A stretch of 64,000 nt of DNA. Origin: Octopus sinensis (Eukaryota). Position 1 is the stretch's first letter. Each line of letters starts with the position of its first letter. The notes below the pieces were generated by a model that saw only the letters and a list, made by a program, of their open reading frames with translations, did no database searches and was not told where the DNA came from. The translations under genes and the position numbers were made by a program. Positions 38,778 through 59,262 of the stretch are shown piece after piece. The stretch is from the NCBI RefSeq assembly GCF_006345805.1, contig NC_043005.1, positions 65,038,001 to 65,102,000 of the forward strand, read 5' to 3'.

Positions 38778-39323
38778 GTTGTGGAATTCGCTGTCCTGCG
38801 GATGTTAACATAAAGCTGAAGATCAGTGAAAAAGAGAATACCTATGCTGACCTATTGAGTAAACTGCAGTTACTCTATCCAGATTCCAAGTTCAGGTTTA
38901 CACCTGTAATTATTGGAGCCCTGGAATATGTAACACACTGCCTAAATGTCAATCTTGAGAAATTAGGGTTCTCAAAGCCAGTAAGGAGAAAGCTAATTCG
39001 AAGATGCAGTCAATCACTGGAACTGTAAAAATTTGTAAAACTTTCCAGATGTTTATCATTTAATATATATTTGAGCTCGTCTAGATATTCAACAATACGC
39101 ATGGGAATTCATACACAAAGCAAAACATAGAAATCTGCACATATACATACATATATGCTTACATACATACATACACACACACATACGTACATACATAATA
39201 ACATACATACATACAAAAATCCTGTTGTTGATGTTGAAATTCCAATGAAGGAGCCTTGAATCTAGGTTAGAAACCAGCTCTTTCTTTATTGGCAAGAAAT
39301 CTTGAAATAAAACTGAACACTAA
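38778..39323 (+). mobile_element. RLE LINE 3' end in (TACA)n, copy 1
   Basis: VVEF..DVNIKLKISEKENTYADLL..FRFTPVIIGAL..LEKLGF (RLE C-terminus). TACA tracts at the 5' junction, inside the 3' UTR and at the 3' end. Confidence 0.9.
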
Positions 39324-39369
39324 CATACATACATACATACATACATACATACATACATACATACATAAT

Positions 39370-40308
39370 ATTATCTTTTACCTTTTACTTGTTTCAGTTA
39401 TTTGGCAGTGGCCATGCTGGGGCGTCGGCTTACAGAATTTTAGTCGAACTAATCGATTCCAGTACTTAATTGCTAAGCGTTGTACTTAGTTCATCAGTCT
39501 CTCCAGCTAAACCGGTTGTCAAACGGGGGTAGAGAAACAAACAGAGACACAAACACATACACACATAGTCATATATGTTTCATCAACAAACAAATACGTG
39601 ATTCATATATTTATCCTCAACATCTTATAATTATATACAGCTATTAAAACTCTTAAATATGTGTAATATTTAAATAGAAGTGTATGTATTATATAATCCA
39701 CAAAAAGCTACTTATAAATAACCAAGGTGACATCTAGTTCAAGCCAGAGTGAAGATAGAAGACAAGAGATAGTTCATAGTTCAAAAAACAAATTTCATGT
39801 TTTTTGCTTTCAGTTTCTGTCTACAAAATCCACTCACAAGGCGTAGGAGTGGCTGTGTGGTAAGTAGCTTGCTTACCAACCACATGGTTCCGGGTTCAGT
39901 CCCACTGTGTGGCACCTTGGGCCGACCCAAGCCTTGTGGGTGGATTTGGTAGACGGAAACTGGAAGAAGCCCGTCGTATATATATATGTATGTATGTGTG
40001 TGTCTGTGTTTGTTCCCCATCACCACCACATTGCTTGACAACCGATGATGGTGTGTTTACGTCCCCGCCAAAAGAGACCGATGGAATAAGTACTAGACTT
40101 ACAAAGAATAAGTCCTGGGGTCGATTTGTTCGACTAAAGGCGGTGCTCCAGCATGGCCACAGTCAAAGGACTGAAACAAGTAAAAGAGTAAGGCTTTGGT
40201 CGGCTCCAGTCTATCGTAGAAGACATTTGTCCAAGGTGCCGCACTGTGGGACTAAACACGGAACCATATAGTTGAGAAACATGCTTCTTAGAACACAGCT
40301 ACGCCTGC
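39370..40308 (-). mobile_element. Older SINE family A copy interrupted by a younger antisense copy
   Basis: Tail 39370-39560, body resumes at 39805-39839 and 40191-40308 on either side of the + copy. Confidence 0.7.
39840..40190 (+). mobile_element. SINE family A (nested insertion)
   Basis: Complete head and tail with small internal deletions. Confidence 0.9.
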
Positions 40309-40339
40309 GTTTATATACATCTGCCTTAAAGAATTTTTA

Positions 40340-40712
40340 ATCGAATGAGTCGATCCCAATACTATTTTTTGGTTAAGCCTGGCACTTATTCTATCGGACA
40401 TTTTTGTCGAACCGTTAAGCTACGGAGATGTAAACACAACACCAACGTTGATTGTCAAACGGTGGTAGACGTCAAGCATAGACACATAATTACATACACA
40501 CGCGCGCACACACACATACACACACACACACACATATATATATATATATATATATATATATACGACGGGCTTCGCTTCAGTTTCCTCCTGCCAAATCTAC
40601 TCAGAAAGCTTTGGTCGGCCTGTGGCTATTGTTGAGGACACTTACCCAAGATGCCACACTGCGGGACTGAACCAGGAACCATGCGGCTGGAAAGCAGGCT
40701 GCTTACCACAGA
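40340..40712 (-). mobile_element. SINE family A, degenerate
   Basis: Head 40712-40561 and 3' part 40490-40340 flank a CA/TA microsatellite. Confidence 0.75.
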
Positions 40713-41372
40713 GCCAAATATATATATATATATATATATATATACAGACACACACACACATATATATATATATATATACACACACACACACACATATATA
40801 TATATATATATATACACACACACACAGACGTATATACATAAATGCACATATATATATGTGTGTGTATATATATATTATGTGTGTGTGTGTGTAATCTTTT
40901 GGGGGCTTACTTATGTGCTCTGGCATTAAAAATTTGAAAATTAAACTGTAACCTCAACCAAAATAGTTAGTTCCATTTAATGACATGCCATTCCCCTAAT
41001 CCTTTGATATTTACATAGTAATCTTATCGAATGTATTCTGACAGATTATTAGTTTGTTGCTATTTAAAGCGTATATAATCTCAAACTTAGTTAAGTCTGG
41101 TCTGTTTAATTTGCATCATCTTTACTTTGCCCCCCCCCCCTCCTCACCCCCGTCATTCCATCATCGATACTACTAACATTCTTTCCTCTCCAGGATTTTG
41201 ACTTTCCAGAATTATTTTCCCGATGAGTGCTTACAACCAAATGACAACATCACAAACTGAAGTTGAACTTCAACGCAACGGCGTATCGATCATAGCAGCG
41301 TGGGATATTTGAGAAATGTAACACGAATGAACTCCTTGAAGAATAATTTACTTTAAACTATTTTCATATATA

Positions 41373-41912
41373 GGCGCAGGAGAGGCTGTGTGGTAAGTAG
41401 TATCATCCGCATCTCATCAATGTCTTTGTCCAGCTCGCAGCTACTTATCTGTGTACGGCTTTCATGGCCAATTTGATGAATAAATGTAGCTTGCTTATTA
41501 ACCACATGGTTTCGGGTTCAGTCCCACTGCGTGGCACCTTGGGCAAGTGTCTTCTACTATAGCCACGGGCCGACCAAAGCCTTGTCAGTGGATTTGGTAG
41601 ACAGAAACTGAAAGAAGCCCGTCGTATATACATATATATATATGTGTGTGTGTGTGTGTGTGCGTGTATGTGCGTGTGTCTGTGTGTGTGTGCGTGTGTG
41701 TGCAGGTGTTTGTGTATCTGTGCTTGTCACCCCAACATCGCTTGACAACCGAAGCTGGTGTGTTTACGTCCCCCTTACTTAGCGGTTCGGCAAAAGAGAC
41801 CGATAGAATAAGTACTAGGCTTACAAAGAATAAGTCCTAGGGTCTATTTGCTCGACTAAAGGCGGTGCTCCAGCACGGCCGCAGTCAAATGCATGAAACA
41901 AGTAAAAGAATA
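41373..41912 (+). mobile_element. SINE family A with an 85-bp insertion in the tRNA head
   Basis: Standard copy except for 41401-41485, flanked by duplicated gtag. Confidence 0.9.
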
Positions 41913-56888: not shown

Positions 56889-57082
56889 GAAGAAGAAGAA
56901 GAAGAAGAAGAAGAAGAAGAAGAAGAAGAAGAAGAAGAAGAAGAAGAAAAAGAAAAACAAGAAGAAGAAGAAGAAGAAGAAGAAGAAGAAGAAGAAGAAG
57001 AAGAAGAAGAGAAGAAGAAGAACAACAACAACAACAACAACAACAACAACAGCAACAACAACAATAATAATAGGTTACTTAC

Positions 57083-57124
57083 ATCGCTGTTCATGAAGCA
57101 ATAAAGAATTGCAAGAAGTAGACC
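57083..57124 (-). CDS. 42-nt TM7 exon of the class B1 GPCR
   Basis: cttttattttacatttcag|GLLLAILYCFMNSD|gtaagt. A phase-0 42-nt exon here is characteristic of secretin-family receptors (GFFVSVFYCFLNSE in CRHR1). Confidence 0.93.
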
Positions 57125-58200
57125 CTGAAATGTAAAATAAAAGTTCTGCAGACTTTCTCAGGTTAATAACGTGAAGTTATATTTTATGCATTTATAATGC
57201 TTCTAACTAACTTTGATTTGCATTGGGAAAAACGAGAATACGAATAGTAACGAATGAAAGAAGCTCCTGAGAGCAAATGCGTTCTTAAAACGAATATATA
57301 GAACATGTAGAAAAAACGCTATGAGAGAAATTTTGGATATTTTTCCCCATATGACAGACATTTTAAATGAACTTGATAGGAAAATGATAGAAGCCATCTG
57401 TACACAAGAATTGAAAAATGTTCGAAAGTAAGAGTTAAAACGTCAGACTATGATTTAATTAATTCTATTAACTGTTTCACCGAAACAAACTCCACCACAC
57501 ACACACACACACACACACACAACACACACACACACACATACACACAGACACACACTCACACTCACACACGCACACTCTCACACACGCACATACTCATACA
57601 CACATACATACATACACACAATTTTACTTTAGATAATTAGTGTTGGCATAGTATGCTAGAACCGTGAATAGTAGTCTTTCAGTGCTATTCCAACATTCAC
57701 TGTCTTCAGCAGACGCACCTGGCTTTATTTTCCGTGACAATTTCTTAGTTATTAGAACTTCGCTCAACCTTGTCAGATGCCATCATTTAGTAACAGAAAA
57801 TAGAAAAGAAAGACTCCAGCTAGTCACAATACATACGGTTTTCTGGATTCTGTATCATTTAATCATTCAATTTCGAAGTGTGATAAGCACACACACACAC
57901 ACACACACACACATGTATGTATATATATATTCATGCAGGCATGCATGTAGTTTTGTTCTCTGATTTTATTTAAATTCTTGAGAGAGTTAAAGCTAGTTGC
58001 TAAGAAAATGACAAGACTATTTGAGTTGAGTGTTCCCGGTATTTGTCACTATATGGTCGCGTTTGTGTGTTGGTTGAACTGTCTATAGATACAGTCAAGT
58101 GTGTGTGTGTGCATCTATTCACATAGGAATCTCATTTGGAGAATTTTTGGAACGTCTAATAAATCTTCACTAGTCACTAATAAATGTATGTATGTATATA

Positions 58201-58842
58201 TGTCATTATTCAGTTTCATTTCAAGATTTCTCTCTAATAGAGAAAGTGCCAGTTTCTAACGTTGATCCAAGGCTCTTTCATTGGAAGTTTAACATCAGCA
58301 ACAGAGTATTTTTGTATGTATGTATGTATGTATGTATGTATGTATGTATGTATGTATGTAATGTATGTATTGTATGTATGTATGTGTGTATGTATGTATG
58401 CATCTATCTATCTATCTATCTATCTATCTATCTATCTATCTATCTATCTATATATATATATAATATATAATATATATATATATATATATATATATATGCA
58501 TACGTGCTTATTTGTATGTTTTGTTTAATATATGTCTTCTGATGTGCATACACTAGACGTGCTCATATAACATACTCATATATGCTTAATTCATAAACTT
58601 TTGGAAAGTTTTACAGATTTTTCAGTTCCAGTGATGGCTTGGATCTGTAATTTTCGAATCAGCTTTCTCTTTTCTGGTTTGAGAAGCCTAATTTCTCAAG
58701 ATTGGTGTTTAGCCAGTGCGTTACATATCCTAGGGCCCCAATAATTACAGGTATAAACCTGAACTTGTAATCTGGATAGAGTAACTACAGATTTCTCAAT
58801 AGCTCAGCGAAGGTATTCACTTTTCCACTGATCTTCAGCTTT
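58201..58842 (-). mobile_element. RLE LINE 3' end in (TACA)n, copy 3
   Basis: Co-linear with copies 1 and 2. 5' junction directly into (TACA)n at 58843. Confidence 0.9.
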
Positions 58843-58931
58843 ATGTATGTATGTATATATGTATGTATGTATGTATGTATGTATGTATGTATGTATGTAT
58901 GTATGTATGTATGTATGTATGTATGTAGGTA

Positions 58932-59262
58932 CGTCATTGTTTAGTTTTATTTCAAGATTTCTTGCCAATCGAGAAAGAGCCAGTTTCTAACCTAGATCCC
59001 AGGCTCCTTCATTGGAATTTCAACATCAACAACAGGGTGTTTTTGTATGTATGTATGTATGTATGTATGTATGTATCTATGTATATATGTATGTATCTGA
59101 GCAGATTTGTATGTTTTGTTTTATGTATGTGTTCTTGTGCGTATAGTTGTATATCTAGACATGCTCGCATGTACTTTTAATGATGAACTTCTGAAAAGTT
59201 TTGCATATTTTTACAGTTCCAGTGATGAATTGGATCTGTAATCTTCGAATTAGCTTTCTCCT
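58932..59262 (-). mobile_element. RLE LINE 3' end in (TACA)n, copy 4
   Basis: Shorter 5' truncation point ([21 protein letters not shown]). 5' junction into (TACA)n at 59263. Confidence 0.9.

Follow-up and report, generated by a model that had tools for sequence, protein, structure and literature searches.

A 64,000-nucleotide stretch of Octopus sinensis DNA (contig NC_043005.1, positions 65,038,001 to 65,102,000; hereafter the window) holds four copies of one long interspersed nuclear element (LINE) family, here called family A, and a fragment of a related lineage, here called the sister. We consider it probable that these are old, dead, 5′-truncated copies of R2-group LINEs that inserted, through target-primed reverse transcription (TPRT), specifically into (TACA)n microsatellites and in one orientation. 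Such a sequence-specific mode of insertion had been proposed in an earlier reading of the window (the original prediction), and it is supported both by the flanks of relatives at other loci (L001, L009, L010 and L012–L014) and by family B, another LINE family of the window, which offers an analogue with (TAA)n.

With the longest copy (c2) as query, blastn found exactly four family A copies in the window: c1 at 38778–39336 (+), c2 at 50915–51469 (+), c3 at 58846–58190 (−) and c4 at 59262–58921 (−). A profile made from relatives recovered the same four, with independent E-values (i-E) of 3e-51 for c2, 1e-26 for c1, 2.5e-19 for c3 and 2.6e-5 for c4; by tblastn, the homology of c2 starts at about 50813–50822. 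The sister, which the original prediction had listed beside these four, matched the family profile weakly (i-E 3.8, the fragment being short) and the extreme C-terminus of one relative, the protein P0100, at 60% across 35 aa (E 4e-8, blastp-short, small database). On sequence similarity, therefore, we accept that 53385–53540 is a piece of a related lineage. The copies and the microsatellites that touch them are listed below; TRF stands for Tandem Repeats Finder, ORF for open reading frame, 3′UTR for 3′ untranslated region and RLE for restriction-like endonuclease.

38673–38777, + strand: (ATAC/TACA)n tract 5′ of c1, presumed remnant of the target (TRF, period 4, 26.5 copies).
38778–39324, + strand: c1, truncated inside the RLE domain, with the C-terminus of the ORF, 3′UTR, an internal (TACA)n at 39143–39215 and a ~110-bp terminal module (blastn, 83% to c2).
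39325–39367, + strand: (ATAC)n tail of c1 (TRF, 100% matches).
50817–51457, + strand: c2, the longest copy, YWWNVPVKT...HNRPDI...VVEISC...PVIIGALG...GTIKNL*; internal (ACAT)n, 51277–51347 (profile, translation).
51458–51469, + strand: short tail of c2, GTACATACATAC (sequence).
53243–53384, + strand: (ATAC)n tract 5′ of the sister (TRF, 36.8 copies).
53385–53569, + strand: sister, with its final ~35 codons and a short 3′UTR (53385–53540) and an impure TACA tail (53541–53569) (blastp-short).
58184–58201, − strand: short impure tail of c3, on the sense strand atatatacatacatacat (sequence).
58202–58842, − strand: c3, whose internal tract (58313–58497) has grown into (TACA)n(ATAG)n(AT)n (blastn, profile, TRF).
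58843–58932, − strand: TACA tract serving c4 as tail and c3 as 5′ flank, in a head-to-tail stack (TRF, 22.5 copies, 96% matches).
58933–59262, − strand: c4, with its final ~25 codons and 3′UTR, internal tract at 59044–59096 (blastn 82.6%, profile).
59263–59383, − strand: TACA tract 5′ of c4 (TRF, 30.5 copies).

The C-terminal motif that had been ascribed to all copies is whole only in c2, where translation gives KHNRPDIMI*DREEKLCTVVEISC...TYAELL...PVIIGALG; the other three family A copies keep part of it, as c1 begins inside VVEISC, c3 begins right after VVEISC and c4 retains only the final ~25 codons. The truncation points are all different (c2 ~50817, c1 38778, c3 58842, c4 59262). Because every family A copy carries stops or frameshifts, and pairwise identities range from 75 to 88%, we regard these copies as old and dead, and they have probably become fixed in the various Octopus species.

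When the four window copies were aligned with a copy from O. vulgaris (locus L001), one common structure emerged. The ORF ends in ...HNRPDI...VVEISC...TY..LLRNLQLLY.DYKFRFIPVIIGALG...GT.K.* and is followed by ~100 bp of 3′UTR, an internal (TACA)n, a ~110-bp terminal module ending ...CTGAAYANTRAC, and a TACA-type tail. The internal 3′UTR tract and the terminal module are present in every family A copy, the one at L001 included (tract ~10430–10480), and together they look like a former tail followed by a captured downstream module of ~110 bp.

At their 5′ ends, the copies c1, c3, c4 and the sister are adjoined base for base by same-strand TACA tracts of ~105, ~90, ~122 and ~146 bp, respectively; in c1, for example, ...acatacat passes directly into gttgtgg. 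Four of the five window copies, c2 being the exception, thus begin in (TACA)n on the element's sense strand and at differing truncation points, as had been claimed. The TACA ends claimed for all five were also seen, in the form of tails of ~45 bp (c1), 12 bp (c2), ~18 bp (c3, impure), ~90 bp (c4) and ~28 bp (sister, impure), and the predicted head-to-tail arrangement of c3 and c4 was borne out by the tract that they share, at 58843–58932.

In principle these junctions might reflect no targeting at all, but the abundance of TACA in octopus DNA or a passive build-up of copies in repeat-rich regions; the microsatellite content of the window is indeed very high (120 TRF rows), and other transposons adjoin TACA tracts too. 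However, (TACA)3 with at most one mismatch lies immediately upstream of only 0.77% of window positions (both strands), and with this background the probability that four of five 5′ junctions fall in TACA by chance is ~1.7e-8. Moreover, the junctions are base-precise and always involve the same strand, and at three loci with relatives of the element (L009, L012 and L013) no TACA tract is present in ~20 kb other than the ones in contact with it. Chance association was rejected on the strength of this probability and of these three loci, and we regard an absence of targeting as extremely improbable.

The six loci whose flanks support insertion into TACA are the following (P numbers denote the encoded proteins); the relatives at L010, L012, L013 and L014 are full-length and intact or almost so.

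L001 (O. vulgaris): truncated at another point; 5′ flank (CATC)n(CATA)n; almost no tail.
L009: copy of the L012/L013 family, 5′-truncated by 45 bp; 5′ flank a compound TACA/CATC tract of 263 bp; tail ~98 bp.
L010: P0162, 1083 aa; TACA at either end of the contig.
L012: P0282, intact, 1164 aa; 5′ flank at least 290 bp of pure TACA, then GCTCACTCAT (gctcactcat...); tail ~110 bp.
L013: P0278, 1130 aa; 5′ flank ~130 bp of TACA plus 15 extra nt, then a 5′ end of the L012 type; tail ~125 bp.
L014: P0293, 1126 aa; 5′ flank at least 250 bp of TACA, then gccgtgcag...; tail ~70 bp.

Since the L001 copy has almost no tail, its 5′ repeats cannot derive from one. At L014, three LINEs of the same orientation are stacked head-to-tail between 4001 and 13601 with TACA tracts between them, namely a short young copy (99% identical), a third lineage (~40% identical) and the intact 1126-aa copy. 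Taken together, 12 of the 15 5′ junctions of the TACA lineage lie in same-strand TACA: those of c1, c3, c4, the sister, L001, L009, L010, L012, L013, L014 and the short copy and third lineage at L014.

Several observations weigh against TACA-specific insertion, beginning with the sample itself, as the argument rests on 15 junctions only. The copy at L011 belongs to the L014 family and is nearly full-length (~125 bp missing); despite a TACA tail of 124 bp, it is joined on its 5′ side to non-TACA DNA, and a small local duplication accompanies this junction. At L002, an old copy of the same family has TACA on neither side. At c2 there is no TACA on the 5′ side, where the element meets a Tc1/mariner transposase fragment, truncated and of opposite strand. 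This last fragment (50111–50797, −; QDDNVPIHTAK..., PKITAISTKTVRQEPHKARFHGR) lacks its N-terminus and ends exactly where c2 starts, and the 3′ flank of c2 is a fragment of a short interspersed nuclear element (SINE), so that a rearrangement or deletion is likely at this place; the c2 junction is ambiguous and uninformative. Because of these three exceptions, TACA on the upstream side is to be taken as usual, not obligatory. The 5′ joining step of TPRT is known from R2 to be variable, and the non-TACA junctions would fit this variability; they would equally fit if the repeat were required on the primed 3′ side only.

A further contrary observation comes from L009, where a unit made of (ATAG/GATA)n plus 62 bp is duplicated outside the whole TACA–LINE–TACA block (8167–8504 and 12766–12872). 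One possible reading is a non-TACA target that underwent a target-site duplication of ~100 bp, in which case the 5′ TACA tract would have been made at integration, by a jump of the reverse transcriptase (RT) to a second RNA tail or from upstream TACA read through into the RNA, and the target itself would be arbitrary. Template jumping is a known behaviour of R2-type RTs, and the 15 extra nucleotides at the 5′ junction of L013 could likewise be ascribed to such events. Nevertheless, a pre-existing repeat seems to us the more likely explanation at L009: the 62-bp units differ at ~4 positions as against a single frameshift in the LINE ORF, suggesting that the duplication predates the insertion; an old (CATC)n block lies within the 5′ tract; no flanking duplication accompanies any other copy; and the related L012 copy is embedded in a compound AC/AT/TACA microsatellite extending to either side of it. 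Beyond L009, the 5′ tracts are long (up to ~370 bp, at L014 9258–9625), in some cases include old variant blocks such as the (CATC)n of L009 and L001, and are not preceded by any element 3′ end; among 9 copies measurable at both ends, 7 have a 5′ tract that exceeds the tail. An origin of the 5′ tracts at integration therefore seems very unlikely to us. Target-site duplications were found neither at the window copies nor at L011–L014, as expected for insertion inside a repeat. A 55-bp match near c1 was considered as a target-site duplication and rejected, because it belongs to another repeat.

Insertion into a microsatellite is displayed independently by family B, whose copies in the window are flanked by (TAA)n:

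54159–54447, + strand: (AAT)n 5′ of B1, 289 bp (TRF, 97 copies).
54448–56557, + strand: B1, 5′-truncated, with RT, CCHC and RLE, ANRPNI...LIDM...KYKDLEIE...PVVVGTLG (tblastn with P0128, P0183 and P0056, E 1e-80 to 1e-86).
56558–56609, + strand: (ATA)17, both the tail of B1 and the 5′ flank of B2 (TRF, 100% matches).
56610–56887, + strand: B2, short and 5′-truncated, stacked in the tail of B1 (blastn, 86.7% to B1 56298–56557).
56888–57066, + strand: compound tail of B2, (AGA)45(AAC)14(AAT)3 (TRF).
62521–62564, − strand: B3, a tiny 3′-end fragment in a 459-bp (ATT)n at 62295–62753, (AAT)n on the sense strand (blastn, 82% to B1 56513–56556).

Three family B copies have (TAA)n on both sides, which to judge from these flanks is the behaviour of a classic Dong element. 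The tail of B2 departs from the (TAA)n unit, having drifted or been mis-templated within one tract. In both families the unit of the tail is that of the 5′ flank, TACA in family A and TAA in family B, and the coincidence in two families with different units is hard to explain except by targeting.

Targeting could, however, reside in the RNA. A (UACA)n tail might pair with any nick or break in a TACA tract, the endonuclease having little sequence specificity of its own; tail unit and flank unit would then agree in every lineage, as they do (TACA for family A with its relatives, TAA for family B), stacks would arise in older tails, and the 5′ side would not need to be TACA, as in the L011-type exceptions. 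We think this unlikely on two grounds, neither of them decisive. The upstream tract ends in the same phase, ...CATA, at six 5′ junctions (all four full-length ones, c4 and the sister), which may indicate that the top strand is cleaved in a fixed phase, although microhomology blurs the picture; and the N-terminal Myb-like region of the relatives (see below) is the type of module proposed to govern site choice in R4/Dong elements (PMC7998251).

For the preferred reading, in which the protein would also recognize the repeat, we propose a mechanism by analogy with R2 (structures 8gh6 and 9dou). Within a TACA tract, the protein would nick the (TGTA)n strand, and the (UACA)n tail of the RNA would pair with the nicked strand, which would then prime synthesis of complementary DNA. 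Early stops in this synthesis would produce the differing 5′ truncation points, and the end of the new DNA would be joined to the upstream part of the tract, sometimes through microhomology or with a few extra bases. The anatomy of the elements, the nuclease fold and the same-strand TACA flanks on both sides are shown, the latter in several lineages; where the nick falls, what tail pairing contributes and which part of the protein reads TACA are inferred. Every insertion would split a tract and add a tail (as well as an internal tract in the octopus family), creating new targets and hence the head-to-tail stacks.

The family A copies in the window are truncated downstream of the RT, which B1 retains, and for the domain architecture of family A we relied on the 4,059 relatives that a profile search retrieved from 1.84 billion representative proteins. 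Long relatives combine an RT domain (Pfam RVT_1), a CxxC...H...C knuckle and the family A-type C-terminal domain in a single ORF of 1,080–1,170 aa. Pfam detected RVT_1 in P0014, P0056, P0128, P0055 and P0022, and the RT, the CCHC knuckle and the C-terminal domain occur together in P0014, P0056, P0128 and P0162. Among structures in the PDB, the RT of P0162 is nearest to R2 proteins (E 3e-21). The CCHC knuckle lies between RT and endonuclease (CRLCRNAVEDTCHIVAGC and equivalents in P0014, P0017, P0012 and P0056; CRVCQQQNETIDHVVSKC in B1), with weak matches of the relatives to Pfam zf-RVT. Precomputed Pfam annotation of P0162, P0282, P0278 and P0293 contains RVT_1 only.

The C-terminal domain gave no match when its sequence profile was searched against the PDB. 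An AlphaFold (AF2) model of it (176 residues; mean confidence as pLDDT, predicted local distance difference test, 92.7) had as top Foldseek matches the R2 proteins R2Tg, R2Pm and R2Bm, with TMq 0.60–0.72 over 164–174 aligned columns (nearly the full length of the model), followed by PD-(D/E)xK cap-snatching nucleases. The domain conserves an RPD...E...K...Y pattern, and no endonuclease of the apurinic/apyrimidinic (APE) type (Exo_endo_phos) was matched by Pfam in the full-length P0056 and P0128. With its RT nearest to R2 and an R2-like endonuclease fold, family A is consequently assigned to the R2-group RLE LINEs, bearing out the RLE LINE identity that had been predicted from the C-terminus.

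At the N-terminus, the A-type proteins and P0128 have in common the motif SYRRNRDYS..W..EL....Y......GYMKR.K..W...HPE. Pfam returned no match for this region even at E 10, and no zinc finger was detected in it. A divergent N-terminal Myb/SANT-like domain without zinc fingers has been reported for R4/Dong (PMC7998251), and the conserved region appears to resemble it. Sequence and structural modelling thus support a single-ORF R2-group RLE LINE predicted to consist of an N-terminal Myb-like region, RT, CCHC and RLE.

None of the long relatives is the octopus element itself. The original prediction had called for recovery of a full-length copy, and this succeeded only in part: full-length relatives were obtained, of which the closest are ~50% identical to family A, but they are not from Octopus, and for family A proper no full-length copy was found, the protein search having returned only short octopus fragments. 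With the C-terminal reading frame of c2 as query, that search led to O. bimaculoides and O. vulgaris proteins of 82–84% identity. Many dispersed repeats are common to the window and the O. vulgaris chromosome locus L001, and with these matches the window is identified as nuclear DNA of Octopus. The full-length relatives have no DNA repeats in common with the window and therefore come from other hosts. A gene for a G-protein-coupled receptor (GPCR) that neighbours the relatives' locus has as its only named relative one from Aurelia (a cnidarian, jellyfish), at 41% identity.

A scan of metagenomes yielded four relatives only. For two of them, L007 and L008, the contig stops at the 3′ end of the element in (CTTA/TTAC)n. 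Both have a 3′UTR of ~1.1 kb, and a decayed TTAC-like run is present at the 5′ junction of L002 (~9885–9913). The superfamily may also include a TTAC-tailed lineage.

Of the known systems, R4/Dong comes closest to the TACA elements, with R4/Dong and HERO as candidate clades. R4/Dong elements insert into ribosomal DNA (rDNA) or microsatellites, the Dong target being (TAA)n in most insects, molluscs and cnidarians (PMC7998251). Members of this clade, such as Dong of Bombyx, DongAg and DongBg of the snail Biomphalaria, resemble family A in having a single ORF with RT, CCHC and RLE, a microsatellite tail, insertion into that same microsatellite and frequent 5′ truncation, and they may agree with its lineage in the conserved Myb-like-looking N-terminus with no zinc fingers detected. 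Family A and its relatives differ from Dong in using the tetranucleotide (TACA)n instead of (TAA)n, and their RLE region is only ~26–30% identical to that of family B-like proteins; the octopus family differs further in its bipartite 3′UTR with an internal TACA tract. In octopus repeat annotations, Dong-R4 LINEs of ~4.2 kb are abundant and recently active (PMC13282606, PMC8967140), and family A elements are probably labelled Dong-R4 there; the two papers do not discuss insertion targets.

Microsatellite-specific LINEs include, besides Dong with (TAA)n, Kibi (TC)n, Koshi (TTC)n, Mino (AC)n and Waldo (ACAY)n (PMC3812793). Waldo (WaldoAg1, WaldoAg2, WaldoFs1) comes nearest in target, as ACAT is one form of ACAY (PMC3812793), but it belongs to the R1 clade and carries an APE-type endonuclease, whereas family A has a C-terminal RLE and an RT nearest to R2; the similarity is one of convergence on a similar target, not of kinship. 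Togen, with (TG)n, and some leech HERO families encode an RLE and are flanked by their target microsatellite (PMC4640811); they differ from family A in their repeat units, and Togen is near NeSL. R2, which provides the nearest solved structures for both RT and endonuclease and presumably has the TPRT mechanism in common with family A, is distinguished by its N-terminal zinc finger(s) plus Myb and by a unique site in 28S rDNA instead of a microsatellite. The original prediction had named Dong as a precedent and was aware of no TACA-specific RLE element. Dong, Togen and some HERO families are confirmed as precedents, and we found no report of an RLE LINE specific for TACA, ACAT or CATA in the literature, Repbase being outside this search. 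What is new, then, is the probable TACA target for an RLE LINE, microsatellite-specific RLE LINEs being already known.

More tentatively, the elements might represent a deep, previously undescribed Dong/R4-like lineage that switched its target from (TAA)n to (TACA)n, has kept the new target across very distant hosts (Octopus, and hosts of which one gene has a cnidarian named relative) with members ~50% identical, and is a main generator of TACA in octopus genomes; we hold this broader picture possible but somewhat doubtful. If it is true, the presence of a TACA and a (TAA)n family in one genome would constitute a natural system for finding the part of the protein or RNA that reads a microsatellite. 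Target-specific RLE LINEs such as R2 are under development as DNA-insertion tools. To our knowledge, site choice in R4/Dong is an open question, and we know of no target-recognition assay in that group. The intact TACA-type relatives P0282, P0278 and P0293, together with the two-family genome, would allow the determinants of target choice to be mapped, the candidates being the N-terminal Myb-like region, the RNA tail and the endonuclease.

Irrespective of how the target is read, the association between family A and TACA tracts is close. Eleven of the 17 perfect TACA tracts (at least 4 units) in the window lie within or adjoin the element copies, and the 20 kb of O. vulgaris DNA at L001 are free of perfect TACA tracts except for short runs next to the element copy. 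It is plausible, from this association only, that family A explains the abundance of TACA in octopus. The element may feed back on its own targets, using existing TACA tracts while seeding new ones. Part of the octopus Dong-R4 repeat fraction would be tied to specific microsatellites. As a practical caution, TACA and TAA microsatellite markers of octopus would often have shared LINE-derived flanks.

Other repeats of the window also touch microsatellites. An octopus SINE family has at least 9 copies, among them 39368–39600, 63164–63437, 13131–13249 (−), 17712–17843 (−) and 40073–40191 (−); 5′ ends of this SINE adjoin microsatellites (the TACA tail of c1; (TTA)n at 13251), and at the end of one copy there is a long (TACA)n (63338–63437). 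Possibly this SINE serves the TACA LINE as a non-autonomous partner. Another repeat is present in two copies (24842–25143 and 32393–32620; 90–93% identical), each of which starts right after a TACA(CAC) tract, and two copies of a three-copy repeat (13880–13983, 60584–60687 and 62184–62287; ~85% identical) stop exactly at (ATT)n, at 13983 and 62295.

Weak RT-like matches to the query LINE proteins (20–29% identity) were obtained at 3219–4133 (+) and 9084–9578 (−) and are probably fragments of other LINE clades. The window finally contains two tandem two-copy duplications, one at 33847–34250 with a period of 204 bp (95% matches) and one at 36480–36846 with a period of 183 bp (90%).

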